From: Gracilinanus agilis
Taxonomy: Eukaryota
NCBI RefSeq assembly: GCF_016433145.1
Contig: NC_058135.1
Location: 276,142,426 to 276,206,425 of the forward strand
Direction: 5' to 3'
Length of the DNA: 64,000 bases
Shown: piece by piece, positions 1,191 to 63,690 of the stretch
Layout of the letters: the number at the start of each line of letters is the position of its first letter
Numbering within the stretch: the stretch's first letter is position 1
Made by a program: the position numbers and the translations under genes
The notes under the pieces: model-generated
Told to the model about the DNA's origin: nothing
The model's database searches: none
What the model saw: the letters and a program-made list of their open reading frames with translations, nothing else

Positions 1191-4100
1191 CTATTAGTTT
1201 TGTAGATAGCTTTTGATATTTACATCATTACAGTGTTCATCCATCCATTCAGCATTTTTTAATACTTTCTGCAATTGAGTTTCTGTGATGTAGACAACTT
1301 AGGTGCAAAAATGTGTTGAAATCTATTTATCATCTCTGGATGATCTTATACGGACAGTTTAGTTGATAAAGAAATGGGACACTGGAGAAAATCTTTGTTA
1401 ACTCAGAGCTGCTTCTCCAAAGTGCCACTGAGTCACAAGTTTATTATATATGAAAATTCAAACTCCCTTTCACCCACAAGCACAGAGAAAGATTTATGGC
1501 TGCACAGAAATGCCATTACAACTTAGGCAATACAAAGAGGCTTCAAAGGCGTCAGGATGAAGATAAGAACCAGGTTGGACTTTCAGCTACCTGATTATCA
1601 GCAAGCTAAGTCTGCTCAGGGGTGAAATGTCCCTGCTAAACTAAGGTTTCAGCCTTGGCTTGCCAAGGAACTGCATTTCTGACCAAAGGGGAAGATTGTT
1701 AACCTCTTGACTACTGGTTTGCTAAGAGCTTAAAGTTTTCCAATAAGACCACAATATTTTTCAATAAGAAAAGGTGTGGATCACAAAAGGGGTCAGAAGA
1801 GGAGTCTCAGATTTTTTATCTATTTAATACTCTGATTCTCTTATTGTCCTCCCACAAAAATGAATAAAATATACTTTCTGTCCCCTGGAAATTTTAAAAT
1901 TAATGTAATCTAGCCATAAGTAAGTCTTTTCAGTGATCATTCAAAAAAAATTCAATGAGTGTTTTTTTAAGTTCAAGGCCATTGATTGCCAAAGTATTAC
2001 AGGAAGAAGAATAAGACATAAGTATTTGTCTCTTGGAGTTTAAAGTCAGTAAATTATATCATAATTGGAAGGATAATTTATTACTTGCACAACTGTACAC
2101 AGAGTCACAAAACAAGACAAAATTTAAACCTGTTAAAAATAACTTATTTTATGCATCTGAAAATCTATTACATGGCAAAAGGATTGGCTTTATGTTGCCT
2201 GAGCCCAGATGGCAGAACTAGGAGAAAAAAATGGGATTTGCAAAGGCATAGCTCTAGGTTTTGTGGGGGGAAGTCCTTTGCCAATTTTAAGTTATTTGTT
2301 TTATTTTTCTAGATTACTTGCTAATACAGTTTTGAATAATAATTTTCTGACATTTTGTGACCTATGTTTTATCTCTTCTTTCCAATGTTCCCCTCTCAAA
2401 GACAGCAAGTAATATTATATAGGTGGTATATCTGTTATCATGCAATTTGTATTTTCATATTTGTCATATTCTGAAAAAGACACATATTGCTTATACTAGA
2501 GAAAAACTTATGTAGGGGAAAAATTGAATGGTATGCTTCAATCTAGTTTTAGACTCAGATCATTCTATAGTGATGGATAGTCTTTTTCATTATGAGTCCT
2601 TTGGAGTTGCACTGGATTCTTGTGCTGCTCGTAGTCATTAAGTCATTCACAATTCATAGCCTTTTATTGCTATTACTATGTACAATATTTTGGTTCTGCT
2701 TTTTTTTACTTTACATCACTACATGTAAATCTTTCCAGGACTTTTTTGTGCTCACGTTGTTTATTATTTCTTATGGCACAATAATATTCCATCACAATCA
2801 TACATAATTTTTTATCATTTTGAGCTATGAAAACTTGAAATGGATCACCTAAGGAGGTAGGACTTCTCTCCCCCTGCAAAGTTTTCAAGCAAATCTGTGT
2901 ACCTACTTCTTGAGCATGTTAGATATATTTCAAACTTTCAAAAATTTTAAGTGATAGTTATTATTTTCAGATAATGATAAAAATTAGAGTTATATTTTAA
3001 GAATATTTAAAAGGATTTCAGAGATTATGGAGCAAAATATTTAAGAAAATTATTCTTGCTATCTAGGCAATAAATAATGAAGTCTAGAACTATCATGATA
3101 AAAGTTGGCTTCAGTTTTATTTTGTGAAATATTATTTTCCCTCACCCTAAATGATCTGAGTATTGCAACCTCTGTATCCAGGTATTACAAAGGATATTTC
3201 CTCTCATCGTTTTTTGACAAATGCTAATGGCCTTCCTGAGAGAAGACGGCTAAATAAACAGGATAAACATATGCAGATCAGCAAGACATGGAGCAAATCA
3301 AATCTTTATCATTTTCCAATATCATTTTAATGAAGATTTAATTGCTTTAGCAAGGAAACTTCATTCAAAAGGAGTTTGGTCATCCTTTTGAAGTCCATAC
3401 CTTATCCAGAATATTTACTTATTATTATTAAGGGAGTTCATTCTTGGATTTAGCTCATCCTGTTTAAAATTATAAAATAATTCATAAGAAAATAAACCAC
3501 CAATTCAAATGTCTCAGTTGTTGTCCAATGTAAAAAACAATTTGGTTCTTCAAATGGAATTCTATAAAAGTTGTAGCTCCAAATACTACTTTTTTTTCCT
3601 TTCTGGTTATGTTATCTTTGGGCAAATATTTCCACTTCTTTGGCACCAGAAAATTCTCTAATATTTACTTAGTACATATTATATATTTACTTATATACTT
3701 ATATACTTGTTGCTGGAAATTGTTTACATAAAAAAAGTTCCTGATGTTGAAAAAAATAATAAATTATATGTGAGTATCAAGTGAAAAGATGAATTTTATG
3801 TAAGGGATCTAAGGTTTCTTTCAGGTTTATTAATCATCCCTCTTTTACTGAATTCCTAACTTGACCTCTTTTCATGTATAAGGTCTGGCTTTATAAAAAT
3901 AGGATGAGATATATTGTATTATTTAGAATATAATATATAAAATATAGAAATAGAAGAATACAGCAGAAAAAGTCTTAATTAAATTTGTTCACATGTGGAG
4001 GATGAAGTTGTGGACAACTGTAAATCTAACTTATTTTAAGTTATCTGGCCTAGTAATATATACAATTTATGTCCATGTTTATTATTAATATTCTAAATAC

Positions 4101-7632: not shown

Positions 7633-7644
7633 TGTGTGTGTGTN

Positions 7645-9552: not shown

Positions 9553-9628
9553 TAATTGCTTATCATCAGCCCTAGGGTTAGAGTTGCTCCAGGGAACATG
9601 TCCCATATGCCAGAGAACAAGATATAAA
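9553..9628 (+). promoter_or_regulatory. Predicted promoter of the OR5AS1-like gene
   Basis: Homeodomain site TAATTG (9553-9558), EBF/O-E core CCCTAGGG (9570-9577), shared motif CCAGGGAACATGTCCC (9589-9604), TATAAA (9623-9628). Confidence 0.6.
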
Positions 9629-10237
9629 TATTCCTCTTACTTCACTCAAGTTGTTTTTAATATCAAGAAGAGAAATGTGTGTACACTGCACATGTAAGTT
9701 CTGCAAATTATATTTTGAAGCTTTCTAAAACTGATGTGCATTTTCACCAAAATTATGAAAAGAACTCTTTTAAGACAAAATTGTGATCTTGGTAAGGAAC
9801 TAGGCATCAAATACAAAAATGGTTCTACTGTCCCACCACTGAAATTATTTATGCTTTATATTCTTTTTTAATAATGATGATTGTTTTGGCCTGATCTTAC
9901 TGCAATAGTATCAAAGGCACTTGTGAGGCAGCTGGTCAGGTAAGGTAAGTATTAAATCTGTGGACAAGGGAAAGGTTAAAACTGATGATTCTTCATAGGC
10001 AAGAATGACTATCTTTGGTACTTATTTTATTTTGTTTTTTTGGCAAGTCTTAAGTGTGAGATCTTAAAAATGTGATACCATATTTTAGCTTGGGAGACTC
10101 GAGCCTTATCATCTTGATCCTATGTAGTTTCTCAAATATTACAAATTTCCATACAACTATAATTGGAATGGTCTTTCTAACTTAATTTATAGATATCAGC
10201 CTTTTAGGTAATATGTTTTCTGCATGTCCAAACTGCA

Positions 10238-10670: not shown

Positions 10671-10800
10671 NNNNNNNNNNNNNNNNNNNNNNNNNNNNNN
10701 NNNNNNNNNNNNNNNNNNNNNNNNNNNNNNNNNNNNNNNNNNNNNNNNNNNNNNNNNNNNNNNNNNNNNNNNNNNNNNNNNNNNNNNNNNNNNNNNNNNN
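10671..10800. other. Assembly gap (130 N)
   Basis: Direct. Confidence 1.
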
Positions 10801-13800: not shown

Positions 13801-14381
13801 CATAATGAATTTTTTATCTTTGCATTGTCTGTACATACTCCTGTCATTTTCATACTTTGGTGCACTGATTAGACAAGGTGAATAGAATGCTGGATTTAAG
13901 TTAGAAACACTTGGGTTAAAATGCTACATCTGACTTAAAATTAAGTTCATGACAATGGATAAGTTATTTGAATTATCTGGGCTTCAGTTTCCTTATCTTT
14001 AAATGGGGCTATCCATAATAGTGGTACAAGTTTAAAAAAAATTTGGAAGGATCAAAGGAGGTAAATATTGAGATTGCAGTGAATGTTAAAAGACCATATA
14101 AATATTAGTCATCATTATTTCATTAGAACTTGAACTTTCAGATAAACTAAATTAGTGTTTCTTTGACACCATTGTTGAACATCATTTAAGACTTTCCCCT
14201 AAATATTGACAAGCAAGGAAGAGGAAGTGATTTGTTGATGAAACAAGAAAGACATTCTTATTTGTCTATTCATTTTCACAGAGGTGAGATAGAAGGAATT
14301 CTGGGACTATCCAATCACACACACCTCAACTGAAAACCCCACCTACTATTCATCTCATTAGTGAAGTTCTTCCCAACTGAG

Positions 14382-15320
14382 ATGTCTGAAAGAAATTATA
14401 CTGCACCAACTGAATTTGTTTTCGTTGGCTTCACAGATTATCTACCAGTCAGGATCATTCTCTTTCTTTTGTTTTTGGCCATCTATGTTTTGACCTTGTT
14501 GGGGAACATTGGTTTAATAATCTTGGTCAATATTGATTCTAATCTTCAAACTCCCATGTATTATTTTCTCAGTAATCTCTCTTTTCTAGATATTAGTTAT
14601 TCCACAGCCATAGCTCCCAAGATGCTGGCAGACTTCTTAGCTTCTAGGAAGAATATTTCTCTGTATGGCTGTGCCCTTCAGATGTACTTCTTTGCATGTT
14701 TTGCTGATGCAGAGTGCCTTATTCTAGCTGCAATGGCCTTTGATCGCTATGCAGCTATCTGTAACCCATTGATTTATTCAACACTTATGTCCAGAAAAGT
14801 GTGTGTTTGCTTTGTTGTCTTGGCTTATGTCAGTGGAAGCATGACTTCACTGGTTCATGTATGCCTGGCCTTCAGGTTGCCATTCTGCAGATCCCATGTC
14901 ATTAATCACTTTTTTTGTGACATACCACCATTACTAGCTTTGTCTTGTGCCAGCACCTCCCTCAATGAACTTTTGCTTTTTGCTTTGTGTGGCTTCATCC
15001 AGACTACCACCTTTGTGATCATTTTCATTTCTTACTTCTGTATTCTCATTACAGTCCTGAGCATCAAATCTTCTGGAGGGAGAAGTAAGACTTTTTCCAC
15101 TTGTGCTTCACACTTAATAGCTGTAGCTTTATTCTATGGGACACTTCTGTTCATGTATTTACGTCCTAGCAACAAATACTCCCCAGACACAGATAAAGTA
15201 GTTGCTGTTTTTTATACTGTAGTCTTTCCCATGTTTAACCCTATTATATACAGTCTGAGAAACAAAGATGTGAAAAATGCACTGAAAAAAATGTTAGACA
15301 GAATATCTCCAAATCAATAG
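14382..15320 (+). CDS. OR5AS1: Olfactory receptor, family 5, OR5AS1 orthologue (312 aa)
   Basis: Intact ORF with OR motifs: N-glycosylation [58 protein letters not shown]. Matches recalled human OR5AS1 stretches ([55 protein letters not shown]). The ORF track starts at a GTG (14361); the ATG at 14382 gives the canonical OR N-terminus. Confidence 0.92.
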
Positions 15321-17715: not shown

Positions 17716-19724
17716 AAAATGCTGGGGAGGTGTGAAAAGTAACATTATCATTTTCCTTGTAATTGATTGGTGGCAAAAGTTACACTGTGAGACATATGCT
17801 GTTTTTCATTGTTCGAGTTCCTCTGAGTACTAAATTTATTATGCTTTCAAGGGTGATTATTGGATTAATATTTCATAGCAAATATATGCTCTTTATTGAA
17901 TCTGTGTCAAGGAATTAAGCAGAGGCAATCTTAAAATTTTGTCAGTTATCTCATGATACCACACATTTTATATCATGAGATAACTGAGTATGTGATTCCT
18001 GATTACTGGAAGACTTGTGGTCTAGGAAAAACTTACTTTTTCAGATTGGTGGAAAATGGATTGGATTGGAGAGAGTCTTGAAGGATGAAAACCAATCAGG
18101 AAATTATTGTAATACTTAAGGTGAGACAAGACAAAGATCTGAATTAAGATGAAATTTATTTGAGCATTATGAAGGCAATCAATATGAGTAATGTTTTGAA
18201 AGTAAACATATTTTCTGTCTTCATCCAAGAGTTCAAAATAAATCACTCTGCAAGCAATTGTAAGTCTTATTAAATGACATCAAGTAGGAAAATCATACAA
18301 TTTCTTAATCATAGAGGCCATGAGAGCTTCTAATCCAACCCATATCTCAGGTAGAATTCTTTCCACAAAAATCAGAGTAGATAATTGGCTCTTCAATCTA
18401 TATTTGAAGACTTAGAGTGATTGGGAGCCACATCTGAAGAAATTAATATATTTCCCTTTTTACATTCTTTATACTGTAATAATATAATTTTAGTCTGATG
18501 CCTCTATAAAGGTAATTGCATATTTCTTACACTATTCTCATTTAAGATAAATTACCTTTGCTATTTCAACTTTGTGGAAGAGAAAGTCTGTTTTGATTTG
18601 TAGAAATTACATAAAATAAGTAAACGTGTTGGAATTTGGACAGTTGAGAGCAAGGGAGAGAGATAGAAGCCTTTAAGTCATGATCCTGAAAAAGAATAAC
18701 AAGGGAAGGAAATATCATATCTTGGCCTTGGACTTTATGTTAGCAGGAGGAATTTCAGACCATAGAAGATTTTCATCTATTTTTAGCAGTACCTCTGCAA
18801 CAGTAGTGGTCATGCAGTATCTGCAATGGGTGCAAAATACAATTCAGAAAAACAGAGGAAAGTAGTAGTCAGGATTCTATAAGGAACACAATAGAAAAGG
18901 TACACCTGTGTCTCAGGGAAACTCCATGAGTAATCCATGAAGGGGAGAAAAAGCCTTATAGATATAATAGTGAACAATAAGTTATCCTTTGATACATGAG
19001 CTCTGTAAAGGTTGTGCTTACATTCTCTTGTAATCTGCAGGTAATTATGGGAGAGTATGTCACAGACTTTAGCAAAGAACATTTTAGATGAAGTGTACTA
19101 TTGAAATAAATATTTAATTCTTAGTCAAGTTCATTAAATTGTTCTAACTAACTGCTATTATGTGATAATCATGGTGAGAGTACAGAGTTGTAGACTTCTG
19201 AGCTATAGAATTCGAAAGACTAACTCTAGCAATTTCCCTAAAATTCTGAAAAAGAAATATAGAAAACAAAATCTGGAGCTCATCTGCCAATATATAAATG
19301 GAGCTTGAAGAGAGTGAATCTAGGCAGGAATTCTTGATCTAGACTAAGAGTGTAATATATGAAGTGCTCCAAAATTTGAAGAGGAAAAAATTATATGTTG
19401 CTAGCTGAAATTTAGTATTTGCTTCAAATATGAATGTAACCAACAGGTATTCTGAGAAGAGGTCTATAGGCTTCACTAGGCTGCCATAAAAGACCATGAT
19501 ATTATTTTATTTTATTTTTAATTTTTTTCAGTTTCCAACATTTTATTTTTTTTTGAATATTTTACCCTAGTTACATATTTCATGTCATGATTTTAAAAAT
19601 ATCACCAATCACCAATTTAGAACATGTACTATACCTAATAAAGGGGAATCCATTTGTTGAAGGTTAGGTTTAAAAAGCAGAGCCTCTGACAGGTCCTAGA
19701 AAGTTTGATTGTCTTTATTTTTTT

Positions 19725-28056: not shown

Positions 28057-28177
28057 TCCCTGAAGACTCCAAAAGATACTTTAATGACCTAGTCTGAAGA
28101 TCAGAATTAAGTGACCTGAGATTCAAAGCTAGGAGCCAGGGATGATGTCCCTGAATAATAACGAATGAAATTATAAA
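28057..28177 (+). promoter_or_regulatory. Predicted promoter of the OR5J gene at 36363
   Basis: EBF-like TCCCTGAAGA (28057-28066), TAATGA (28082-28087), shared motif CCAGGGATGATGTCCC (28136-28151), TATAAA (28172-28177), perfect donor AAG|GTAAGT at 28246. Confidence 0.6.
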
Positions 28178-28589
28178 AATACTTTACATAAGCTTAAAAA
28201 AGCATGAAGTTATACTTAACCTGGATACTGGCTGGCCTAAATAAGGTAAGTATTACTTGATAATCATATTATAGGTATTTTGATCAAGATTCACAATGTT
28301 CATGTACCTTCTCTAAGAGTATCCACCCAATAATATTTTTATACTGCACTTCTCAAAAACTCTGAACTGCAAATCAAAATTTAATGGATATTTCAGGGTT
28401 TTTTAAAAATTGATTCAAATTGGAAGTATTAAGTGTATTTATTGTTTATGTTTTTCCTAATAATAAGACTTGGTGATTGAATCAATAGTATCATTGCCTC
28501 AAATCCCTACTTCACTTTTGAATTCATTCTTTGAGCACTGGTTCCTATGATTCTATGATAGCATCCCCTTAATCAATTAAAAAAAAAAC

Positions 28590-30733: not shown

Positions 30734-30935
30734 TTTGTTTTTGTTTTTGTTTTTCTTTTTAACCCCTTAACTTCTGTGTATTGGCTCCTAGGTGGAAGAG
30801 TGGTAAGGGTGAGCAATGGGGGTCAAGTGACTTACCTAGGGCCACACAGCTAGGAAGTGTCTGAGGCCAGATTTGAACCTAGGACCTCCTGTCTCTAGGC
30901 CTGACTCTCAATCCACTGAGCTACCCAGATGCCCC
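30734..30935 (-). mobile_element. Didelphid SINE (copy A of tandem pair)
   Basis: Full length with T-rich tail; flanked by gaccatagactttt at 30720 and 30937. Confidence 0.9.
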
Positions 30936-30950
30936 TGACCATAGACTTTT

Positions 30951-31139
30951 TTTTTTTAATTTTAAACCCTTAACTTCTGTGTATTGACTTATAGGTGGAA
31001 GATTGGTAAGGGCAGGCAATGGGGATCAAGTGACTTGCCCAGGGTCACACAGCTGGGAATTGGCTGAGGCCGGGTTTGAACCTAGGACCTCCTGTATCTA
31101 GGCCTGACTCTCACTCCACTGAGCTACCCAGCTGCCCCA
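30951..31139 (-). mobile_element. Didelphid SINE (copy B of tandem pair)
   Basis: Full length; flanked by tgaccatagactttt at 30936 and 31140; diagnostic bases shared with the SINE at 35081. Confidence 0.9.
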
Positions 31140-34100
31140 TGACCATAGACTTTTAATAGAGTTTTATAAGTTTTTTTTTTTGTGTTTGTGAGAAAAAATC
31201 ACATAATAATCAGCGTATGATTTTAGTTTATTCAATACAATGGAGATTTTAAAAAGAAGATAATTTCAAATAAGGCATGCATATCTTTGCTGCTTATTTA
31301 TTCAATCATTTCCAATTCTTGTGATCCCACTTTCTTGGCAAGGAAACTGGAGTTGTCTGTCATTTCCTTCTCCAGGTCATTTTGAAGATGAGGAAACTGA
31401 AGAAAACAGAGTTAAGTGACTTTCTCAGTGTCACATACCTAGTAAGTGTCTAAGCTCAGATTTGAACTAAGATCTTAACTTTAGGCCTAGCACTCTCCTC
31501 ATTTTCCACTTAATTGCACTATTCTATACCTATACTGGTCTGATTTCTGAGGATAACTAAATGGAGATTTGAGGGAAGTTGTCCTTTTTGTTTGGGTATG
31601 TCTAAATAAGTACAAAGGGTCTTGCTTTTCTATTTATATATAGAATATTTAGAAGAGTGATTTTAACAAACTAATCATTTTGAATTTTATTTTTCTTCAT
31701 TCATTCCAAATATGGGCCATCTTTTCACATTTTCAGCATCAGAATAGACAGAGTTCTCAAGTTTATATTTGGAAATAAATATATTTTTAATTGCTTTTTT
31801 CATCTGTGGAATTTTGAATACTGCATTACATGTGTTTAAAGGAATGTGTGGGCTAGTTAGGAATTCATTTTATAATACAAGAATGTGAGCTTTTAAATAT
31901 TCTATATTTTATTCACAGTCTAGTGTAGCATTGAGGATTGGACATAAAGTAACATAAGACTTGGTTTTAAATATTGACTTGGCTCTTAAAATATGTTTGT
32001 GGTCTTTGAATTTAAAATATTTTTATAATTGAACTTTAATACAGTTAATTTCCTTCATCTTTGGGTATATACATATATATGTTTATACATAAAATTTATC
32101 CTTTTAATTAGACTAACTTGTATACATATTTAATTTGAATAATTTTATACTGAGAAGTTCATGGGCATCATTAGTCTGCCAAAGCAATTCATCTCTTGGT
32201 TTATCTGTGTCTATTTGCCTGCCTCTCTCATACCCCCACACATATATACTAATAAAAAGTTAAGAAACCTGGATTAAGAAGGAAATATGACTGATAGAGA
32301 TGTGGGTGGAAGTAGACATGTTTAATTTTTTTTTAATTTTATTCTGCTTATATCTAAAATTAGAGCCAAATGGAACCAACTGAAAATAAAATAGTGATAG
32401 TTTTGGTCATTATCTTGTGGATTTCTTTTATACCCCAAACATGCTGTTAGCTAAGGTTCTTTCCAAAATTTCTTAGCACACTTACATGTAGTAAGGAGAT
32501 AATAAGTATTCAGCTGACCATGATGAAATATAGTTTCTGATAAAGTCTGCATCAATATTTTTCATTGTTCAGGAGAAAGATTATTATTTTGAGAGTTTGG
32601 GGAAGGGTTTTTTTAAGCTACTTTGTTAAGAGTCAAATTTCTAAGAACAGTGATGAGATTTGTGACTTAATGACTGAAACTTCATCTACATATTTGAAGA
32701 TGATGGAGATATTTTGTTTAAAATATTTTACTGAATGCATATCCATGAAGAAAGAGAAGGGAAGGATTTTTCCAAATGAAAATTATATGATTTGAAGTAT
32801 CTATCGACAGTAGGCTATTTTCTGTGAGGGGGAATTTACTCATAAAAAGATAATATATATGAATTAATGCAAGAATTCTAGGCTAATATGACAATCACAG
32901 ATATCAGTTCTAACTGTTAGAATATTACATTGCCTAAAATAAAATAATAGTCACTAAACCTACAGTGTTGGTATATATAGAATGATTCATTATTGCAGAT
33001 GGAAAACATGGAAAGATTGAAATTAAATTAAATACATCATAATTTGTTGAAAATGTTCATTCTTAGCTCAATGATCACGATTATAAATAAGGATTAGATG
33101 CATTTTATCCATCATTTGTTGAGGCCAAAATTTATCATTTTAATTAGACTAACTTGTTTTCTATTATCGTTCAGAATTTTTCTTATATATCAGTTCATAA
33201 TATATAGTGATATTCCATATCAATCATTTTCATCTACTATCATTGTATTAACTGCATTTTTACTCATTACCCTGTTGATGTTATTTCTAATTCAAATGAT
33301 CTAGAAATAAACTATCTCAAAACTTAAAATGTTAATCACAAACTCAACAATGTAATTATAAATTTTTATCTCTATCTCGGACCTACTTTTGGGGAAAAAA
33401 GTGATCTCTGGGCAAGAGATTATTTCTTTTTAATTACTTTTAATTAGAATAATTGAAAATTATTTTCCAGAATGATTAAAATGTGTAATTTTCCCTCTAA
33501 GTTATCACTATGTCAACGTTCTCATAATTATTCCAATGCTTGCATTTTTGTGTGAAATCTGAATTTACTTTTTGGTTTTGCTAATTTTATTATGGATTAT
33601 TTGGAGCTATTTATTAAATGGTTATTAACATTCATCATTTCTTTTAAGAATTAATTTGTGATATCTTTTCATCACTTTTATGTGGGGTGAAAGGTTGGTA
33701 GTATTTTGAAGCTGTAATAATTCCTAATGGAACTTGGATATAGAAATCATATCAGAAATGTTTGATGAAATTTTCTAATTGAATGATTTCTTATTCTAGG
33801 TTCTTTCATCTTGTCTGCAATTTAAAAAAATATTGTATTTTTAGGTCAAAAGGAAATATTTTTATTTCTTCTGTTGTCACTTTGATTAGAATTTTAATAT
33901 TACCACAAAATCTCATTGCTTTCTCCCAAAAAACTTATAAAATAGTGCTATTACAACCACCATTTTACTGATGAGGAAATTGAGGCTGATGATAGGCAGA
34001 AATAGTTTGCCCAGCATCACATATATATAAATTGATTGAGGACAAATTTGAACTTAAATATTCCTGATTGTTGGTCTACTACCCAAACAACCTTGTTGAC

Positions 34101-36362: not shown

Positions 36363-37304
36363 ATGGCAGTATGGAATCACACTGGATTTGTGAAAGAATT
36401 CCTTCTTGTAGGACTGACTGATATCCCAGAATTGCAGATCCCTCTTTTTTTGCTCTTCTTTGTCATTTATATGGTTACTCTTGTAGGGAATTGGGGTATG
36501 ATCATAATTATCTGGATGAATATTCAACTTCATACCCCTATGTACTTCTTCCTCAGCAACCTCTCCTTATGTGACATTTGTTACTCTACTGTCTTTGCTC
36601 CCAAGATGTTAGTCAATTTTTTAGTAGAGAACAAAGCAAGTTCATTTGCTAGTTGTGTTTTACAAAGTTTCTTTTTTGCCGTGTATGTTACCACTGAGGG
36701 TATCCTGTTGTCTATGATGGCATATGATCGCTATGTGGCCATTGCCAATCCATTGCTTTATACCGTTGTTATGACTCAGAGAGTCTGCATTTTAATGGTT
36801 CTTGGCTCCTACTTAGGAGGTTTAATTAACTCATTGACCCACACAATTGGTTTGCTCAGGTTGAATTTCTGTGGCCCCAATGTTGTAAATCATTACTTCT
36901 GTGACATCCCCCCACTCTTGAAGCTCTCTTGTTCTGATGCACACACCAATGAGATGTTACTTTTAATTTTCTCTGGAGTGATTGCAATGTTTACCTTCAT
37001 AATCATAATGGTGTCCTACATCCATATCATCATTGCTATCCTGAGAATCAAATCAGCCGAAGGAAGACGCAAAGCATTCTCTACCTGTGCATCCCACTTG
37101 ACAGCTGTGACCTTGTTCTATGGCTCTGTGACCTTCAGTTACATACAACCAAGTTCTCAGTATTCCATGGAGCAAGAGAAAGTTTCTGCTGTGTTTTATA
37201 CACTCATAATCCCTATGCTAAACCCTCTAATCTATAGCCTGAGAAACAAGGAGGTGAAGGATGCAGCAAAGAGATCGATCATTTGGAAACATTCCCATAA
37301 TTGA
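36363..37304 (+). CDS. Olfactory receptor, family 5, OR5J subfamily (probably OR5J1-type; 313 aa)
   Basis: Intact ORF: NHT glycosylation site, [49 protein letters not shown]. Shares OR5J hallmarks with the two downstream genes (TTEG in TM3, [14 protein letters not shown]). Confidence 0.93.
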
Positions 37305-37495: not shown

Positions 37496-37860
37496 AGTCA
37501 CTATTGCACTTTGCAAATATCGTCTTATTTGATCCTCACAAGAACATTGTGAGATAAGTGTTGTTACCGTAAGTGAAGGAAGATGAAGCAAATAAAGGTT
37601 AAAAAACCTTATCAGGCTCACACAGGTGTTAGGTGTCTAAGGCTGAAATTCTGTGGCCCAAATTTAGTAAATCATTACTTCTGTGACCATGTCCTAATGC
37701 CTACACCAATGAGATATTACTTTTTGTCTTTTCCAAAGTGATTGAATGATTACCTTCATAATAATTATAATGGTGTCCCACATCTATAGTGTCATTGCAA
37801 TCCTCAGAATAACTTGGGAATTCCTGACTCCAGGCCCAACACTCTAATCACCGTACCATT
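37496..37860 (-). mobile_element. CORE-SINE (MIR/Mar1-type) split by an OR-derived insert
   Basis: atttgatcctcacaagaac...ggctcacacagg...gtgtctaaggctgaaatt [insert] aact...ttcctgactccaggccc: the two halves are in consensus order. Confidence 0.7.
37641..37810 (+). pseudogene. Degraded internal fragment (ECL2-TM5) of the neighbouring OR5J gene, inserted in a CORE-SINE
   Basis: Aligns by eye (~80%) to 36859-37048, e.g. gtaaatcattacttctgtgac, acaccaatgagat, taccttcataat, ataatggtgtcc. Has an ~25 bp internal deletion and small indels. Confidence 0.85.
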
Positions 37861-45808: not shown

Positions 45809-45960
45809 GGAGAGGGCCCTCTCTGCAACTTGCATCTGCCACTGGATGTGGAACCACCCAAATGATAGTAATGTTCTACATGCAATTTTTGTGAATGCCC
45901 CAAGGTCTTCAAATTATATTCTTAGTGATATATTTTTGTTGTTTGCTTAAGCTTTTATTG

Positions 45961-46001
45961 ACCTATAGGGAATATGTCCCCAAGTACAAGATAAATATAA
46001 A
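45961..46001 (+). promoter_or_regulatory. Predicted promoter of OR5J2-like A
   Basis: Shared motif AGGGAATATGTCCC (45967-45980), TATAAA (45996-46001). Lies in a block alignable to 58868-59300. Confidence 0.6.
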
Positions 46002-46296: not shown

Positions 46297-49200
46297 GTAA
46301 GTAAAATGCATTCTTAAAATTCTGTTTTATTGATTTGAATATAAATGAATGCTTTCATATTTGAATTTTCTCAAAATATTTTAATATAATGAGGAAACAC
46401 ATGGGCACTAATCTTTAAAGTACTGTGTTTGGATCATGGCTTTGATACTTATTAGATTTTTGACCTGAGGAAAATGAAAAATTATCTCTATAGAACTTAA
46501 TTTCTTCATCTACAAATTAAGAGGAATAATTCTTCTAATGACTGAAATTCAGTGGTTTTGTGGATGAAGATCAAAGATAATAAGAGTTGCAAAGTTTCTA
46601 TATATTTTAAGAAGCTACATAAATTTACTGTTGCAGATGATGATACTAAATATGGTAGTGATGGTAGTGATGATGATAAATCAGTTCATGTTTGGGCTTT
46701 GAAAGAGAAATAGTCATTTAAATGGAGCTCAAAACAAGATTAAAAGCAAAGAGAACAGTGTAAGGAAAGACTCAAAGGGGGATAAATAAGGTTTTATTTT
46801 TCTTAATTGCTTACGAAGTCACTTTGGCTAAAACATATAGGTCTATACAAGCTCATTGCTTTGGGTTGCCATAAGTGAAGAGGAATATGGGTATCAGGAT
46901 GATTGTGTTTCACTTATAGATGTGTAAGATGAAAAAAATCACAAACTCTTTGACTCTCTATAGCCTCATTTATAAAATCAAGGCAATAACTTTCCTACTT
47001 TACTGCTATTGCCTTGAAATCAGGAAAAGATAAGTTTAAGCTTTGCTTCTGCCAGCTTTATAGTCAGTGTTGTCTTAGTCTATAAGACCTTCATAGACAA
47101 AGACACATTAGTAAATTGAATTTTTTTAAAAACTGATAACCTATAGATATTATTGCAGAATAGGAGAAAGTAGGAAAAAGGAGAAAGGTCCAATTAACTC
47201 ATTATATATTTGGCATTTTTTCATTCTTGTCAACAAAATGAGATAGGGACTAAAATTATTTATGGGATTTAGAATCCATTGAATGGTCAATTTCTAAAAA
47301 TAATCATTATTACTTCAATATAAATATGGAAGGAGATTTCTCACTAAGTACTCCAGGGCATATGATGCTTGATATTAATGATGCTTAATTCAACACATTT
47401 TGTTGTTCTCTGGTCATTTTTAGTGGTGTCCAACTCATCATGACCCCACTTGCAATATTCTGGAAAAAAATGGATTATAATGGATTGACTGGTCATGTCT
47501 TTCTTCAGATTATTTTATAGATGATGAGAAAACTGAGGGGGAAAGGTTTAACTCACTTGATTTTTGTCACAGCTAGTATGTGTGCTAAGTCTGGATTTAC
47601 ACTCCAGAAAAAGAGTTTTCCTTATTCTTGGCATTAAACTATCCACTTAACTATCTCACTAGTCGAATTCAATCCACAGATAGCATAATTATTCAGTTTC
47701 AGATAATATAAACTTATTTTGGATATAGAATTCACTAGTAAAATCAGAATTCAGTCAGGATCTAAAAAGATCTTGATAAGCTAATATATTTATTTTATTT
47801 TAATTCAATTAAATCCCTTGGAAATAAATGTAAAATGTTGTGTATTAACATATAAATGTCATAAATAAAGATGAAGGAAATATCACTAGAGAGCAGTTTC
47901 TCAAGGGAAAAAATAGAGTTCACAATAGTGGAGTGTAGTTGTGTTCATGGACAGCAAAGTCAATAGAAGTCAGCAGTGAGTTATATAAAAGGCAGTAAGA
48001 AGCTAAAAAGGCAAATACTATCAAAGTTTATCTTAATATATTGTTGTATGAATAGAGTCATATGAAAAAGATAGTACTCTGTGAATCACTTTGGTCACCC
48101 TGGCTTAGAAATGACATCAGTAACCTTAATTCCATTCAGAAAAAGTTTGACCAAGGTGGTAAAAGGACTCAATACCATTTCTTGTAAAATAAAAAAAATG
48201 TTTAGAATAGGAAAGGCAACATTTATTTCGTAGCTGATTCAAATACTTAAAGCATTTCCACATCAAAGAAATATAAGAGAACTTCCTGAAATTTGAGGTG
48301 GGGCCTAAGAAGAATTGGTGGGAATTAAGAAAATATAAGTTTGGATCAAAATAAAGAAATGCATCTTCTAATTATAAATCTGCAGCTTTTTGGAATCAAT
48401 AGCTTTAGGAGATTATAGATTACACTCTTTGGTGAGGATGAATGATTAATTATGATTAATATTGCAGAATTTTTCTCAGTAATATGTGATGACTTAAATA
48501 TCTTCTTCAATCATGTGATGTATTACTAATATCGATTATGTGATTATTGTTTTCCTTTTAAATTAAAGGATGAATTTCCTCCATAACTGAAGAAAATCCA
48601 TCAAATAATTTTGGACTAAAATACTAAATATATGATGTAAATATAAATATAAAATGCTAAAATGTTTATTTCTAACAGGTTCATAATGTTCAATACACAA
48701 ATGAGGAGCCTGATTGTCAGAATAATTAAGTACTACATAGTGGCTTGGTGGCAGAATTGAGATAAGACTAATTCCACACAAGTGCTTAGTGCCAAATATG
48801 AGACTGGAAGTTTAAAGTCTGCTATTCTGAATCCAGTGTTTTGGTTCCTGCACCATGATGCCTCCTTAGTTTTCATTTAAATCTCAACTAGAAAAAAAAT
48901 AATAATAGTTATTATAAAGTAAATTCTGAAACTGATATAAAACTCTTTCTCATTACATATTTTCCTTATACAGTGTTCATTTAACCTCATTTTCCCATTT
49001 CAAATCTAAATGAAATAGAGGAAATAATTCAGAGGAAAGTATTGAAAAACCTTGAATCTAGTCTCAATTCTCATACCAATGTCTTTGAACAAGTAATTTC
49101 TCAAGGTGCAGTTTCATTAAAATGAGAACATTGGACAATATTAAGTCTATAAACTTTTTATTTCTAACTTCTAAGATTTTCTCCCCAATTCTGATATCTG

Positions 49201-50811: not shown

Positions 50812-51756
50812 ATGGCCAAGGAAAATTCTACAGTAGTCACAGAGTTCCTCCTTTTAGGACTGACAGATCGTGAAGAATTGAAATTGATTCTCTTTATACT
50901 TTTCCTAATGATCTATATCATTTCTTTGATGGGGAATCTTGGAATGATTGTATTAATTCAAACCACCCCTAAACTTCATACTCCCATGTACTTTTTCCTC
51001 ACCTGTCTCTCATTTGTTGATGTTTGCTATTCTTCTGTTGCTGGACCAAAAATGCTGGTGAATTTCATTGTGGATAAGGCAACCATATCATTCACTGCTT
51101 GCATGTTGCAATATTTTTTACTTGCAATATTTATTACTACAGAGGGATTTTTCCTAGCAGTAATGGCATATGACCGGTATGTGGCAATTGCTAAGCCACT
51201 TCTTTATATGGTAGTCATGACCAAAAGAGTGTGTATCATGTTGGTCATTGGATCATGTATAGGAGGCATAGTTAATTCACTCACACACACAATTGGTTTA
51301 GTCAGATTAACATTCTGTGGGCCAAATGTCATCAGTCATTTCTTCTGTGATTTACCACCACTGCTGAAGCTCTCCTGCTCTGACACTTCCCTAAATGAAT
51401 TATTGGTTATAATATACTCAGGAATAATTTCTGTGATCACTCTCTTGACTGTAATCATCTCCTATATCTTCATTGTTGTTGCCATTCTTAGAATCTGCTC
51501 AGTAGCTGGAATACGTAAAGCCTTCTCAACATGTGCTTCCCATTTGACAGCTGTGACATTATTCTATGGCTCCATAACCTTTAACTACATTCAACCAAGC
51601 TCCCAGTATTCCCTAGAACAAGAGAAAGTAGTCTCTGTATTTTATATCATGGTGATCCCAATGCTAAATCCATTGATCTATAGTCTAAGGAACAAGGAGG
51701 TCCAGGATGCTGTTAAAAGAATAATAGAATTAAAAACATCTTTTTTATCAAAATGA
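50812..51756 (+). CDS. OR5J2-like: Olfactory receptor, OR5J2-like paralog A (314 aa)
   Basis: Intact ORF with all OR motifs. TVVTEFxLLGLTD, KLHTPMYF, KATISFxACM, FITTEGF, LSCSDTSxNELL, YIQPSSQY and EQEKVVS match recalled human OR5J2. Confidence 0.92.
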
Positions 51757-54700
51757 AGCCTTTGGTCCAAAAATAGTGAATGTAGAGAATGTAGCAACAC
51801 TAACCTAAATAGTGCTTCATTGTAAAAATCAAGGAAATAAAGTGGAAACAAATCTTAGAATCACTCTTTGTGAAAATGTTCATCTCTTCTTTATATATAT
51901 TTTTCATTACAGACTTGAGCACTAAATCCTCTGTATGAAGAAGACTTTTTCACATCTGTTTCTTACTTATATTTATGAATTTATTCTATGGGAAACTTTT
52001 GCTTTTATACTTATGTCACAGAGTCAGCTACTCTCTAAAAAGAAATAAAATTCTTGCTGTTTATTATTTCATGGTCTTACCAATGTTTGATAGCCACACA
52101 AATCCATCCATCTATATACATAAATGTAAACATATCTAGTTTGAAAAATGAAGATGTGAAAAATATATTTTAATATTTTATACAATATCTAAGAAACTCT
52201 ACAATATTTTAGAATATAAAAATAATATAGAATTTATAGTCTAAAGAATAATTATATAGTGATGTGGTTATTATCCCCTTTTGATGGAGATTGAATTAAT
52301 GCTCATTTAGTAATAACTTGAAGATCTCTGGTCACTTCACTACAAATTAAACAAATTAAATTTATTTTGAGATAGTTTTAAGCATTAAGGAATTTTGTTG
52401 GAAAGGAAGGGAACTGCATTATTGTGAGACCAATTTCCTAAAATTAGCTTAAAATAGTGTTCTCCAGTTGGAGCAATTGATGTGATCATTAGAGGAGGAA
52501 AATTAAAAAAAAAAAAAAGCTAAGTTCCTTTAAAGATGACACAATATATATCCCTTTTAGTATCATATTATTTGAGTTGGAAGTATGCCACAGAAAACAC
52601 TAGATGTTAATTCATTGGATTCATTTATTGCATACTTCATAGCCTATTGGCTCAGTTGTTCAAAAAGTTATAATGCTATAATTAAGGCATTAATTCTCCA
52701 CTAATGGGACTAGAAAAGAAAAGTAAAAGAGATTTCCCATTCTTATCTCTACTTAAGAGAGTCATCATTGAATAAAGAGAGAAAAAAAACCTCATATCAC
52801 ATGTAAAATTATGTGGATTCAAGTCTATCTTGTGACATATTTATAATGTGAACTTGGGCAAATTATTTAATCTTTCTAGGTTCTAGAAAAAAGACCAAAT
52901 ATTTTAAATTTTTGAAAATTATCTAAAGGAATTGCCTTAGTCAGGATATCTCTAAATCAGTAAAAGCAAAGATCTACTTTATATCCTTTCTTAACAAACA
53001 TTGCAGTTGTCAGTTTAAGCTCTTAGCAAATATGAGTAAATTTGCCTCCTCAATGAAAACACCTTCCAATTGATTGGCAGTAGATAGACAAAATAATCAT
53101 TTGTATTGCTGAATATTTTTCCTTTTTAGCTGACTATTTTTCAAAATTTTCAAATAGCCAATCTCTAAATATCTAAATGACTAGTGTTCCAGGTAGGATT
53201 TCTTATACTTGGAACATTTGTTCTATGACTTGAATAATTTCAAAAGGCAAAATTTATTATTCTATTCTTCATGGAAATAAAATCCCATCAGTTTTTCTTT
53301 TCTTTCTTTTCTTCTCTTTTCTCTTTTTAAAAATACCAATAATCCATTAATGTGGTTAAATGTCAGGAAGACAGAAAATATAGTAGTATATCTAATCAAA
53401 TATTATATAAGATATAATATATATTATATGGTATATATAAATGTTAAATGGCATAAAATAATGGCCATGGAGAAATCCTTGCTTTATGTTAATTCACTGG
53501 CCTGTAGACAATGATGCATTTTAATCAATAAATGGAATAAAAGTTATCAAGGAAATACATGAGAGTCGCATATAGACTGGTCATAAGAACAGAGGATGAC
53601 AGAGTTCTGATACTATCTATTTGTGATCTTAGAAAAAAGGACAAGAGTTCTCTAGCACATAAGAACTATGATTTGATATTTATACTTCATGGAAAGGAGA
53701 CAGAGGAAGAAGGAAAATCAGAGAAAGGAAGGAATAGCAAAGAAAGAAGGAAGAAATAAAAATAAACTGGAAGAAGTAAAGATCAAAAAATGAGGGAAAG
53801 AATAAATGAAGGAGGAAAAGGAAGTTATGTAAGCAGACATAAGTGGTAGAGAGAAAGAAGGAGCTAGAAAATGGTACATTCAAATCAAACAAGCTTTGTC
53901 CTAGGCACTGAAGTCACCAGAACAAAAAATAAACAGTCCTTCTTCTCAAGAACCTATTGTTCTGATGAGGGAAATAGCAAGTCCATATATAAATATTTAC
54001 AGAATAATCAGAGCAAAGAATCTGATATAAGGCAGATGTGCTTTATATGAGGAAAAACAAAAAGGCTAGACAGTCTTGAACATAGTTTCAGAGAAAGGGA
54101 GAAATGTGTGAAGCTAGTCAGGTAGATAAGAGCAAGCTTTTAAAAGACTGTAAAAGAGGAGGGGAGGAGAAAGAGCATAGTTTATTTTAGAGGAAAACAG
54201 AAAGTACTGGATTTTTTAAGTAGGCAAATGAAATCATCAAAATTGTGTTTCAAGGTGAAAAATTACTTTTCCAGTTTTGTGGAAGATATATTGCATTGTA
54301 CAAGGACTTAATAGAGGAAAACCAATTGGAGGAAAACCATTTAAAAAGTTACTGTAATAATGAAGGTCAGAAATGATAAGGGTTTCATTTAAGGTCAGAG
54401 ATCTGTGAGAATTTTGATGTGATTGATGGCAATTAATGTGCTTGATCATGAGGAAGTGAAAATAAATTATATTATGCCAAGAGATTAAAATTCTATCAAT
54501 CAATCCACAAGCAATTATAAGTCCTATAAGGTGGGGAATTAAGAAGCAGAATCATAAAATCTTCTCAGGATAGGGAATGAGAGGGCCTCTAATCCATCCC
54601 GTCTTTCCTCCACATGATTACAATGGATTTTTGGCTCTCCATTCTATATGTGAAGATGTCCAGTGTTCAGAAAACAGATATATAGAAAATAACATAATCC

Positions 54701-57871: not shown

Positions 57872-58973
57872 CACCACTTTGCAAAATATTAAATTTTGTA
57901 AAGTATATAAAAATATCTTTTTATTCTGAAAAATTGCTATAATGCAGATATTATTTACAAACATTTACAACAAAATAGAAAACTGAGGGAAATATAGCTT
58001 AAATGACTTGCCTCTAATTGCACAACTATTAAGAAACCAAGGTCAGTTTTGAACCTAGTTCTTTCTGACACAATGTCCCTCATTCTATTTGCTTCAGAAT
58101 AAAACTGCTGGGCATTACTACTTCCATGGTCCTATAGAAATCTAATTTCTGCTACATTAAGCCTTCACCACAACTAAGTAATTTCAGCCAATCTCCCATA
58201 GATAAGAAACAATGAATGTCTTAATTACTTTTACTGCATCTAGGACTAAAGCATTGATATTCAGAATCCTTTCAGTATTAGAGAAAGGATCACTGGAATA
58301 GAGGACCAAAGATATGGATTGAGTCACTTTCTATGTTTGGGGATTTTACCTAATCTTTTAAACACTGTGAAAATGAATTTTGTGATCACCTCATTTCTAA
58401 ATCTTAATGTTCTACTTCTTTATTTGAAGAAAAAGATTATTCATTTGATTCGTGCCATGGAGTTGAAAAAAATAAACCAGCCATAACTAGTACATTAATA
58501 TTTAGTATAAAGAACTTCTTGAGAAAGGAAATATTGAAAATTATTATTTCTACAAAATATTAACTTTTCTTGAATATTTTTAAATAAGATACTTCATAAT
58601 TCCCCCCCCCAACATAGTTTTGTTGCCCTCCTTCTAGAGGAGAAAAAATTAAGCATATTCAAAGTCTATTTTTCTAAACTGAGGTAGCAACACACTAAGG
58701 AGGTTTCTTTGCTCCTCAGATTCTCAGAAATAAGAAATCAACTGAAATATAACCATTTATATTCACTCAAATTAAGATCAATGAAGATCTCCTTCACTGC
58801 TCTCTAACTTCTCCTCTATTACATATATGCTCATCTCTTAAATTTACAACTCTGAATGCAGAACTGCTCAATTGATAGAAATGTGTTTTCTGTGATTTTG
58901 TTTGCATTCCCCATGGTCCTCAAATGAATATTATTAATGATGTATTTTTGTTATTAGTTTAAACTTTGCCTGA

Positions 58974-59015
58974 CCTCCAGGGAATATGCCCCCAAGTACA
59001 AGAAAAAAATATAAA
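58974..59015 (+). promoter_or_regulatory. Predicted promoter of OR5J2-like B
   Basis: CCTCCAGGGAAT (EBF-like) with shared motif AGGGAATATGCCCC (58979-58992), TATAAA (59010-59015). Confidence 0.6.
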
Positions 59016-60479
59016 ATGCTCTCTTGTGTCAACAAAGCTTAAAGGAAAGAATTGTTTTCTACTTCTATATCTAACATTTTCATAGTCTTGTGCCTTTTTT
59101 TGTTGGTTTTATAACTATCAAAAACTACAACAACTTTTGGTTCTACTTCCTAAAACCTCAGTTTAGTCTATGTTTGAACTATAAGGTAATGAAGCATTTT
59201 AAGTTATATGCTACTATTTTGATGTATCTGAGTAAGAAACTATGAGAATTAGGTGAGCAACTTCAATAAATTGAAATCTCAATCTATTTGGTAAGTGAAA
59301 TGAATTTCATGTAAATTCCCTTTATTTTTAAATTACTATGAATATTTCAATATTTTGAACTTAATAAATAAAGTGTTTTAACATAATGAGAAAAAATGTG
59401 GACATTTATCTTCAAAGTTTTATGTTTAGAGCATGGCTTTTATACTTAGAACATGATTGACCTGTAGCAATTACCAAATTAGTTCTTTGTGCATCAATTT
59501 CCTTGTCTAGAAAATACTATTATTAACTAAATCACAATAATTATGTATCATAATGGATGTATAATAACACATATATTTTAAGAGGCTATATAAAAGTTGT
59601 TTTTCATGCTACTGTTGCTACTGAAAGTAAATCAGTTTGTTTTGAGTTTTGTCTTAAAGGACAAATACAGAAATGGGAAGATTAATAGAAACAAAAAAAG
59701 TATAAGAAAAAACAGAGAAAGACAATTTTAAAAATTATTTGTTTTCTTTTGTTTTTAAATGATTAAGAAATCCCTTCTGGCTTGATAATAAGGTTCAAAA
59801 CTAGCTCATTAGTTGGAATTGACATATGTTAAAGGGAATTATTGGGTAGGAAAGATAATAATGAATTGAAAGTTATCAATCCAAGAAATGGACATCAGAA
59901 ATATTGGGCTTCATTCCTAGATGTATGAAAGGGAACAAATTATAACCCCTAACCCTCAATATCATCATTTTATAAAATCAGTATAATAACTCAATCTACT
60001 TGACTGGCCTTGACTTGATATCAAGAAAAGATAAATGCAGTCCTGCTTCTTCTGTATACTGGCTTTGTGTTTTTTGTTTGTTTGTTTGTTAGACCATCTC
60101 TATATTATCTACCTTTGCGACCAGATGGACATTTTGATTAAATGTTGGATTTGAACTATATGGTACTTAGATCACCATAAAGTTAGCTAAATACAATAAC
60201 AGAAAATGATAAAAGGACAGAGTCCAAATCCCTGATTTTTAAATTTGACAAAATATTTTATATTATTCCTATGAATAAAATTTGAGATAAAGACTACAAA
60301 TTTTTCTTTAGGTATAGAATTCAATGAGTGAATCATTTTTAATCTTTTAAAATCATTATTTATTCCTTGTAAATATTGAAATAATTGCCTAATATTGTAT
60401 TCCAATGATCACTTCATGGTCAAGAGCTAGCTGATATTACTAACAACTTCTCATTGCAACCCAATGATATCCTAAAAAT

Positions 60480-62069: not shown

Positions 62070-62751
62070 ATTGGGAAATTTCTATACTGTGAGGGGTATC
62101 ATAGGTCTTTTACAAATCTGAGCCTAAGATTCTTCCCCTCAACAGTTGAATATATTTACCACCTTGGCATTAATATCAGCTTAAACCATATTTAACATCT
62201 AAAGATATCTGATTATCCATCACAAGGAAGTTAGTGAGTTTGGGCCCTCATCTGTTAGGAGTTCTCAAGAAGCCTGACTGCTCCCCCTTTCAGAGTGGGA
62301 AAACAGCAGACCAGACAGCAGCTTTGAGAAATAATACTAACACTAATGTGCTGATTTGTAGGTAAAAAAATGGCAAAATTAGATGATTAAATGAATTCTA
62401 AGACTAATTTAAAGGTGAGATTTTTGTTGTTGTGGTTTATTTGTTTTTGTTGTTGTTTTTTAAGTTTATTTATCACCTAAGTCACTTTACCTTACTGAAC
62501 CTCTATTGATTCAATGGGGAAAAATTGGACTAGAGGGTTTCTGAGGTCCTTTTTTTCTTTATATTAATGATATATTATCTAAGAGAATATGTTCCTCTTC
62601 TTTTTCGATTTCAATTTTTCAATGAAAAACATTTTTATGTACTGGTTCCATCTTGATGACTTTACTGAACTTTTTTCCTTCTTTTTTGTATTCCAGATTA
62701 ATTCCATTTTTGTTTTCTTTCTTGCAGTAATTGATATGAAAAACCAAGTAA

Positions 62752-63690
62752 ATGGCCACAGAAAATTCTACAGTGGTTACAGAGTTCCTCCTTTTAGGAC
62801 TGACAGATCATGCAGAATTGAAAGTGCTTCTCTTTATTCTTTTCCTGATAATATATATAATTTCTTTGGTGGGAAATGTGGGTATGATTGTATTAATTCG
62901 AATCTCCCCTAAGCTTCACACTCCTATGTATTTTTTTCTGAGTTGTCTCTCGTTAGTTGATGCTTGTTATTGTTTTGTCTTTGGACCTGAAATGCTTCTG
63001 AATTTCTTTGAGGAGAAGGCAACTATATCATTTGCTGCTTGTATATTACAATACTTTGTATTTGCAGAACTTATTACCACTGAAGGTTTTTTCTTAGCAG
63101 TGATGGCATTTGATAGGTATATGGCGATTGCTAATCCATTACTTTACATGGTGGTCATGACTAAAAAAGTGTGTGCCATTCTGGTCATTGGATCATGTAT
63201 AGGAGGAATCATTAATTCATTGACCCATACAATTGGATTAGTCAGATTGTCTTACTGTGGACCAAATGTAATCAGCCATTTCTTCTGTGATGTGCCCCCA
63301 CTGTTGGAGCTTTCGTGCTCTGACACTTCTGGAAATGAATTGTTGCTCCTGATATTCTCAGGTGTAATTGCTATAATGACCTTCTTAACAGTGATCATCT
63401 CTTATATCTTCATTGTTGTTGCCATCCTCAGGATCCGCTCAGCAGCTGGTACACGTAAAGCCTTCTCCACCTGTGCTTCCCACCTGACAGCTGTGACTTT
63501 GTTCTATGGGTCTGTAAGCTTTAGCTACATTCAGCCAAGTTCACAGTATTCCATGGATCAAGAGAAAGTTGTTTCAGTATTTTATACTATCGTAATCCCA
63601 ATGCTTAACCCATTGATTTATAGCCTAAGAAACAAGGAAGTCAAAGATGCTGTGAAAAGGGCAATAGAATTGAAACCATCTTTTTGTTAA
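62752..63690 (+). CDS. OR5J2-like: Olfactory receptor, OR5J2-like paralog B (312 aa)
   Basis: Intact ORF with all OR motifs. [10 protein letters not shown] and AVKRAIE match recalled human OR5J2. Colinear with the ORF at 50812. Confidence 0.92.

Follow-up and report, generated by a model that had tools for sequence, protein, structure and literature searches.

A homeodomain, O/E and TATA cassette upstream of olfactory receptor genes in Gracilinanus agilis and other amniotes

Each of four olfactory receptor (OR) genes in a 64-kb stretch of the Gracilinanus agilis genome (64,000 nucleotides, hereafter the window) is preceded by a short cassette that is probably the proximal promoter of the gene downstream. 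The module covers about 90 bp: an O/E (Olf-1/EBF)-like site, CTCCAGGGA, lies ~45 bp after a TAATKR homeodomain (Lhx2/Emx2-type) site and forms the left part of the motif CTCCA-GGGA-NNN-T-R-TCCC, which is the consensus of the 24 promoters analysed, and a TATA box follows. Judged by its motifs, the cassette belongs to the known type of OR proximal promoter (homeodomain, O/E/EBF and TATA) and is not a new kind of element. The novelty is a conserved everted half-site and a fixed phasing to the TATA box, both undescribed in the literature accessible to us, which excludes Clowney 2011 and Plessy 2012.

Four cassettes and the receptor genes downstream

The four genes (OR1 to OR4) are intact plus-strand reading frames of 312-319 aa, all of them Pfam 7tm_4 olfactory receptors (Table 1); the reading frame listed for OR1 begins at a GTG at 14361, ahead of the ATG. 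OR1 is 98% identical in protein sequence to Monodelphis domestica OR5AS1 and ~50% identical to the other three, OR3 and OR4 are 80% identical to each other, and OR2, an unnamed relative of that pair, is 65-68% identical to them. OR3 and OR4, called OR5J2-like in the first-pass annotation, are OR5J3-like or Olfr1052-like by database naming. GC content is ~32% throughout the window. Just downstream of OR2 and OR3 lie plus-strand OR-like coding fragments (37616-37743 and 51852-52136; tblastn over TM4-5 and TM6-7, 33-71% identity), which are probably relics of dead OR copies. The OR2 intron carries a 203-bp unit twice (30744-31154, 88% match) that looks like a duplicated interspersed-repeat fragment, and the assembly has a single N at 7644 and a run of 130 N at 10671-10800, the latter in the OR1 intron.

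The core of the cassette, the 14-mer AGGGAWNATGYCCC, occurs exactly four times in the window, always on the plus strand, against 0.01 copies expected from dinucleotide-preserving shuffles, and no fifth exact copy exists on either strand. TATAAA lies 32, 34, 29 and 31 bp from the A of AGGGA, GTAAGT follows at about +104, +109, +331 and +313 from the 14-mers, and the cassettes, all in the sense orientation, stand 4791, 8225, 4845 and 3773 bp before the ATGs of OR1 to OR4. The first-pass annotation had listed these four copies with their strand, TATA boxes, donors and distances and had seen no fifth, and every coordinate was reproduced.

The joint pattern, GGGA-N5-YCCC with TATAAA at +28 to +34 from GGGA, gave four matches on the plus strand of the window and none on the minus strand, where 0.007 were expected on both strands together (300 shuffles). 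Allowing up to three mismatches to the 14-mer added window matches at background level only, and a definition independent of the right half, YR-GRGA with TATAWA, is weak alone (10 matches against 3.9 expected); its matches were kept only where extended homology confirmed them. Two one-mismatch GGGA-N5-TCCC sites with a TATA box (23489 and 39442) and a YR-GRGA match with a TATA box (23791) lack supporting features and were set aside as chance. A two-mismatch copy of the 14-mer, AGAGAATATGTTCC, lies at the end of the OR4 intron (62582-62595, plus strand), 170 bp upstream of the ATG; it is probably a chance occurrence, because about seven matches with up to three mismatches are expected in the window.

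Comparison of the flanks (blastn, ±1.5 kb around the four copies) found collinear similarity between the OR3 and OR4 cassettes only, which are 61% identical from -260 to +1400 (~1.8 kb), whereas the OR1 and OR2 cassettes have no blastn-detectable flank similarity to any other copy. The window therefore holds three independent observations of the cassette, and a shared repeat or a recent duplication is ruled out as the source of the OR1 and OR2 copies. This bears out the earlier remarks that the two OR5J-like copies are not independent and that the flanks of the OR5AS1-like and OR5J promoters do not otherwise align.

The usual plan of an OR gene is a non-coding 5' exon, an intron and a single coding exon. 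Strong polypyrimidine-AG acceptors lie 20-122 bp before all four ATGs, and these, together with the donors downstream of the cassettes, fit that plan.

Table 1. Cassettes, splice sites and coding exons in the window, and cassette copies at loci of other species
Feature	Position	Strand	Details
OR1 (OR5AS1) cassette	9553..9628	+	TAATTG 9553-9558; O/E-like GCTCCAGGGA 9586-9595
OR1 cassette core	14-mer 9591-9604; TATAAA 9623-9628	+	pattern match
OR1 GTAAGT donor	9694..9699	+	end of putative non-coding exon 1; conserved with its flank in koala and platypus
OR1 candidate acceptors	14282 or 14362	+	first exon base
OR1 coding exon	14382..15320	+	312 aa from ATG; Pfam 7tm_4, E = 3.8e-55
OR2 cassette	28082..28177	+	TAATGA 28082-28087; 14-mer 28138-28151; TATAAA 28172-28177
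OR2 GTAAGT donor	28246..28251	+	
OR2 coding exon	36363..37304	+	313 aa; acceptor, first exon base 36241
OR3 (OR5J3/Olfr1052-like) cassette	45923..46001	+	degenerate TAGTGA; 14-mer 45967-45980; TATAAA 45996-46001
OR3 GTAAGT donor of putative exon 1	46297..46302	+	block conserved with OR4 and devil
OR3 coding exon	50812..51756	+	314 aa; acceptor, first exon base 50788
OR4 (OR5J3/Olfr1052-like) cassette	58935..59015	+	TAATGA 58935-58940; 14-mer 58979-58992; TATAAA 59010-59015
OR4 GTAAGT donor of putative exon 1	59291..59296	+	
OR4 coding exon	62752..63690	+	312 aa; acceptor, first exon base 62728
Koala copy	L001:4886		OR5AS1 group
Mouse lemur copy	L002:4609		OR5AS1 group
Mouse lemur copy	L002:15609		OR5J3 group
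Platypus copy	L003:7709		OR5AS1 group
Platypus copy	L003:14075		OR2 group
Echidna copy	L004:325		
Tasmanian devil copy	L005:5284		aligns with OR3/OR4
Tasmanian devil copy	L005:18060		
Asian elephant copy	L006:8130		
Asian elephant copy	L006:13272		
Peromyscus copy	L007:472		
Peromyscus copy	L007:7435		
Peromyscus copy	L007:15186		
Painted turtle copy	L008:9195		
Painted turtle copy	L008:22999		exact 14-mer pattern, from 22998/22999
Tiger snake copy	L011:38970		same strand as the OR

The cassette in other amniotes

We surveyed 11 loci around orthologous or related OR genes of species other than human and the great apes, 305 kb in total, from koala, mouse lemur, platypus, echidna, Tasmanian devil, Asian elephant, Peromyscus (deer mouse), painted turtle, prairie vole, alligator and tiger snake. 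The strict cassette, its definition unchanged from the window, gave five matches on the gene strand and none on the opposite strand, where 0.07 were expected. The pattern had indeed been defined after the fact, as the first-pass annotation cautioned, but its unchanged recurrence out of sample removes that objection. Searches with the exact 14-mer, or with up to two mismatches, missed most distant orthologues, and the distant copies were found by a looser GGGA-N5-TCCC plus TATA scan, an O/E plus TATA scan and an nhmmer profile; relaxed forms of the cassette stand upstream of orthologues in koala, devil, mouse lemur, elephant, deer mouse, platypus, echidna, turtle and snake.

Among copies of the OR5AS1 group, the koala cassette reads AGGGAACATATCCC, 5.1 kb upstream of its gene, and its block is 85-93% identical to the opossum OR1 cassette against a local background of 55-75%, although with an overall opossum-koala background of ~70% identity that pair alone resolves little. 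The mouse lemur copy keeps GGGA-CAGTG-CCCC with TATAAA at +31 between unalignable flanks, and the platypus copy reads GAGA-TCAGG-TCCC, followed by ATATGYCA and ACAAGAT blocks as in the opossum, together with a TTAAAA box and a GTAAGT donor. Two turtle copies have ~25 of 27 bases around the motif in common with the opossum, together with TAATTA 48 bp upstream and a GT donor ~120 bp downstream. One painted turtle copy is the sole recurrence of the exact 14-mer pattern among the 11 loci, with TATAAA 31 bp after GGGA and an OR 2.4 kb downstream.

The platypus copy of the OR2 group has an 11-nt left flank identical to that of OR2, then AGGA-GTTTG-TCCC and TATAAA at +32; 4.4 kb downstream of it comes the platypus OR most similar to OR2 (74% protein identity). 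The OR3 cassette aligns with OR4 and with devil, eutherian and monotreme copies; the devil copy matches the OR3/OR4 pair from the homeodomain block through the motif and TATA block to the distal GTAAGT donor, and the mouse lemur copy, GGGA-CTCTA-TCCC with a CATAAA box, was matched by a profile untrained on it. In the OR5J3-group copies of elephant, echidna and two Peromyscus genes, CTCC(A/T)G(G/A)GA persists with a TATA box at +28 to +32, and the right halves have decayed to TTCT in elephant, CCAT and TCTT in Peromyscus and TTCT in echidna. A fourth group, made up of the devil 'dn' copy, the elephant 'dn' copy and that of Peromyscus gene 3, the product of which is only 46-54% identical to any window OR, has a near-canonical O/E site, TCACTGGGGA or GCCCTGGGGA, then N5, TCCC or TCCT, and TATAAA at +32. 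The snake copy, GGGA-TAATA-TCCC with TTTAAA at +31, has a frameshifted OR 0.8 kb downstream, and the alligator copy keeps GCTCCAGGGA and has lost the right half (AGTG). Pattern and profile scans found no cassette on either strand of the prairie vole (Microtus) OR5M9 region with its four ORs (L009); in this rodent at least, therefore, family-5 ORs do not all have the architecture.

These copies in marsupials, eutherians, monotremes, turtle and snake support the earlier proposal of one shared promoter cassette, which was to be sought in orthologous promoters and is found there. It has been kept since the OR5AS/OR5J split, as proposed, and is in fact far older than that split and amniote-wide. 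The proposed GGGA-N5-TCCC inverted repeat holds in part: T-R-TCCC is widely conserved, but elephant, deer mouse, echidna and alligator copies show decay of the right half. The ATG within ATGYCCC did not generalise, the spacer becoming NNN-T-R.

Across the 24 promoters, many of which are related by descent, the distance from GGGA to the TATA box is 28-34 bp (mean 31, sd 1.44), in agreement with the near-fixed distance first noted; the search did not impose this narrow range, since the first scan admitted distances of 18-55 bp. TATAAA itself is present in 15 of the 24 and one-base variants in six others, and the box is weaker in three turtle copies of a second type (below) and in alligator. The homeodomain site that the first-pass annotation expected of OR promoters, TAATKR, is found 29-57 bp upstream of GGGA (sd 6.4) in 17 of 24, while TCCC, CCCC or TCCT stands exactly at N5 in 15 and TCTC in 3 more. 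In a lineage-collapsed set of 17 promoters, GGGA carries 1.76 bits per position and TCCC 1.12, both upper bounds because GGGA, and partly TCCC, served as search criteria for several promoters; the outer CTCCA carries 0.85, T-R 0.61, the first three spacer bases 0.11 and the flanks ~0.25. By this measure the TCCC half appears about as conserved as the outer half of the O/E-like site.

Several smaller features accompany individual groups. Inside the putative OR5AS1 exon 1, ~45 bp after the TATA box, a conserved AGAAGAGAAATG(T/C) block (9666-9679) has counterparts at the matching place in koala, platypus and mouse lemur; the block includes an upstream ATG (window 9675-9677) and may represent a uORF or downstream promoter element. 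An E-box-like CATATG directly follows TCCC at 9605-9611 and reads CATCTG in koala (L001, ~4900); CATCTG is the RP58-type core, which PMC3247230 discusses in connection with OR and V1R promoters. This E-box-like sequence is limited to the OR5AS1 group of opossum, koala and platypus, turtle reading CATACA or CATAGA. The turtle locus also holds a second cassette type at 3340, 14347 and 28286, GCTCCAGRGA-N5-TCTC followed by a GTCATCAA block and a TTTA-type box at +31 (TTTAAC in one copy). It occurs once per 11-14 kb OR repeat unit, beside the proximal cassette, which points to a pair of alternative promoters for each turtle OR. The platypus OR5AS1 and snake copies likewise carry a (G/T)CATCAAA block after TCCC. 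On the minus strand of the turtle locus, one-mismatch 14-mer matches at 18180 and 19363 lack a TATA box, and the latter sits in apparently repeat-derived sequence.

Proposed function of the module and of its right half

The comparison shows purifying selection on four sequence elements (homeodomain block, O/E-like site, T-R-TCCC and TATA box) as well as on the O/E-to-TATA distance. The cassette is kept in mammals, turtle and snake while the flanks diverge beyond alignment. It therefore goes back to an ancestral amniote OR promoter, was copied when the genes duplicated, and has been maintained by purifying selection.

We infer the start sites, exon 1 and the identities of the factors from the DNA. 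Transcription would start ~30 bp after the TATA box and yield a short non-coding exon 1; the conserved GT donor would close this exon, and splicing across an intron of 3.5-8 kb would join it to the acceptor before the ATG. For OR1, a start near 9650 would make exon 1 ~45 nt long. EBF-family dimers would occupy the left site and Lhx2/Emx2 the TAAT site, the TCCC half may serve as a second, weaker EBF contact or as the site of another partner, and the fixed phase to the TATA box, about three helical turns, may allow the upstream complex to cooperate with TBP/TFIID. Loss of the right half in several lineages indicates that it is dispensable there, and hence that it would modulate promoter function rather than be essential to it.

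The foremost alternative, to which we give perhaps a quarter of our belief, is that the cassette is an ordinary O/E plus TATA promoter in which TCCC is the decaying relic of a second O/E site or a neutral hitch-hiker. Consistent with this, elephant, echidna, alligator and two Peromyscus copies have a lost or degraded right half but keep the O/E-like site and TATA box, TCCC has no good GRGA partner 2 bp downstream, and more than one O/E-like site is often found in an OR promoter (mean 1.38 per 200 bp; PMC3247239). However, the half-site at N5 spans four OR subfamilies, some with only ~50% protein identity, as well as turtle and snake; three spacer bases and the bases after TCCC are randomised, while the T-R before it is conserved too, and TCCC is more informative per position than the outer left half.

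Somewhat less credible still is the bolder proposal that GGGA-N5-TCCC is a distinct cis-element read as a unit three turns from the TATA box, an amniote-old core module for the competence or choice probability of a large clade of class II ORs. In that case two EBF dimers sharing the inner halves, or another factor, would read it.

We consider it unlikely that the everted pair is recognised as a unit by a factor other than canonical EBF, such as an Ikaros-type or other zinc-finger protein, a Rel-like dimer or another factor of olfactory sensory neurons (OSN), with the O/E resemblance secondary. The inner halves are more conserved than the outer, and a canonical EBF dimer, which needs TCCC-N2-GGGA, cannot span the everted pair (PMC4312928). 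Ikaros matrices (yyTGGGagr) are likewise enriched in OR promoters, yet this enrichment is attributed to their likeness to O/E (PMC3247239). Moreover, the element is no true palindrome, its half-sites having unlike flanks (GGGA-W-N against T-R-TCCC), and the extension of its left side to CTCC is exactly what the O/E matrix predicts. To our knowledge no factor fits the 13-bp spacing, NF-kB needing 10-11 bp, and a p53-type decamer is present in the first copy only.

Specific candidates were dropped on similar grounds. A p53-family element requires two RRRCWWGYYY decamers, of which there is one, GAACATGTCC, in OR1 only, broken in koala and in OR2-OR4; an RFX X-box (GTTGCT...GGGAAC) is confined to the OR5AS1 group and a nuclear-receptor TGACCT half-site to OR3 and OR4, and NF-kB, and MEF2 at the TATA box, were rejected for wrong spacing or for presence in one orthology group only. 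An RNA or cruciform reading was rejected as well: the element lies upstream of the putative start, its stems are only 4 bp, and an Rfam scan of the whole window was empty.

It is highly improbable that the cassette is a distal enhancer or insulator-like element and that the true starts lie beside the coding exons. The cassettes are 3.8-8.2 kb from the window ATGs and a two-mismatch copy of the 14-mer sits close to the OR4 ATG; against this, the cassette lacks the juxtaposed Lhx2/Ebf composite motif of OR enhancers (PMC5608512). Furthermore, its TATA box keeps a constant distance of 31 bp and is invariably in sense orientation, the conserved GT donors 60-330 bp downstream and strong acceptors near the ATGs make up the classic OR structure, and the turtle, snake and alligator cassettes are only 0.8-2.4 kb from the coding exon. 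A post-hoc chance match, or an unconstrained remnant of a recent duplication or shared repeat, for which speak the post-hoc definition and the recent paralogy of the OR3 and OR4 copies, is already refuted by the shuffle counts (four observed against 0.007-0.01) and by recurrence of the unchanged pattern in independent species. In addition, the OR1 and OR2 flanks are unalignable to the others, and orthologous positions are occupied by copies in lineages whose separation is commonly dated to more than 150-300 Myr ago.

The choice of an OR gene rests on weak promoters with common O/E and homeodomain sites, and the cassette is a very old and unusually well-kept example of this known promoter type. 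It offers a concrete, mutable grammar of half-site identity, N5 spacer and TATA phasing, testable in minigenes or in edited orthologous mouse genes (Or5as1 and Olfr1052 relatives). Should the right half or the phasing prove important, architecture and not motif counts could be what sets promoter strength or choice probability; should neither do so, the cassette is still a clean marker of OR start sites and 5' exons for annotating the poorly annotated genomes of marsupials, monotremes and reptiles.

Relation to known OR promoters, EBF sites and OR enhancers

OR proximal promoters have reportedly been characterised through mouse M71 and MOR23 minigenes and large start-site maps, in work by Rothman (2005), Michaloski (2006), Clowney (2011), Young (2011) and Plessy (2012). 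Those studies are summarised in PMC3247239 and PMC12547500. OR promoters are AT-rich, M71 expression needs both site types, and a promoter of ~300 bp can drive OR-like expression (PMC12547500); PMC4161876, citing Plessy 2012, reports positional preferences of EBF1 and HOX motifs in OR promoters.

The cassette resembles mammalian OR proximal promoters in being AT-rich, CpG-poor and conserved across mammals, in having an O/E-like and a TAAT-type site within ~100 bp upstream of the putative start, and in its TATA box, short putative non-coding exon, multi-kb intron and single coding exon. It differs from them in the second, inverted TCCC half-site exactly 5 bp from GGGA, in a near-invariant O/E-to-TATA distance of 31 bp and in a sequence retained as far away as turtle and snake. 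Apart from Clowney 2011 and Plessy 2012, the published surveys report no common motif beyond O/E, homeodomain and TATA; they masked the full O/E matrix footprint, which takes in the five spacer bases and only the last base (the final A) of the half-site.

The EBF-type site named in the first-pass annotation is evident in the left part of the motif, which on the minus strand reads TCCCTGGAG and fits the MatBase V$NOLF O/E consensus TCCCyngrgar (PMC3247239); the right TCCC half falls outside this matrix. The reverse complements of the sequences that end in GGGA, TCCCTGGAGC in OR1 and TCCCTGGAGG in OR4, each have one mismatch to the consensus, and the match is weaker in OR2 and OR3, the comparison being by consensus only. 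Like the canonical COE/EBF palindrome 5'-TCCCNNGGGA-3', the cassette uses the tetranucleotide half-sites TCCC and GGGA; unlike it, the strongly conserved pair is everted, GGGA ... TCCC with a 5-bp spacer, and thus not of the TCCC-N2-GGGA form. Read as an N2 palindrome, the left site has 5-6 of 8 core positions in the window, and the 'dn' copies of devil and Peromyscus reach a maximum of 7 of 8. Since one EBF dimer clamps both halves of TCCC-N2-GGGA, each monomer touching both (PMC4312928), the everted pair would not be bindable in the canonical way.

With the composite motif of the Greek Islands, in which homeodomain and Ebf sites abut and a 2-bp insertion impairs function (PMC5608512), the cassette has in common the same two factor classes and stereotyped spacing. 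The two differ in which spacing is held: in the cassette the homeodomain site is not juxtaposed to the O/E-like site but stands at a variable distance from GGGA, and the TATA box is the tightly spaced partner.
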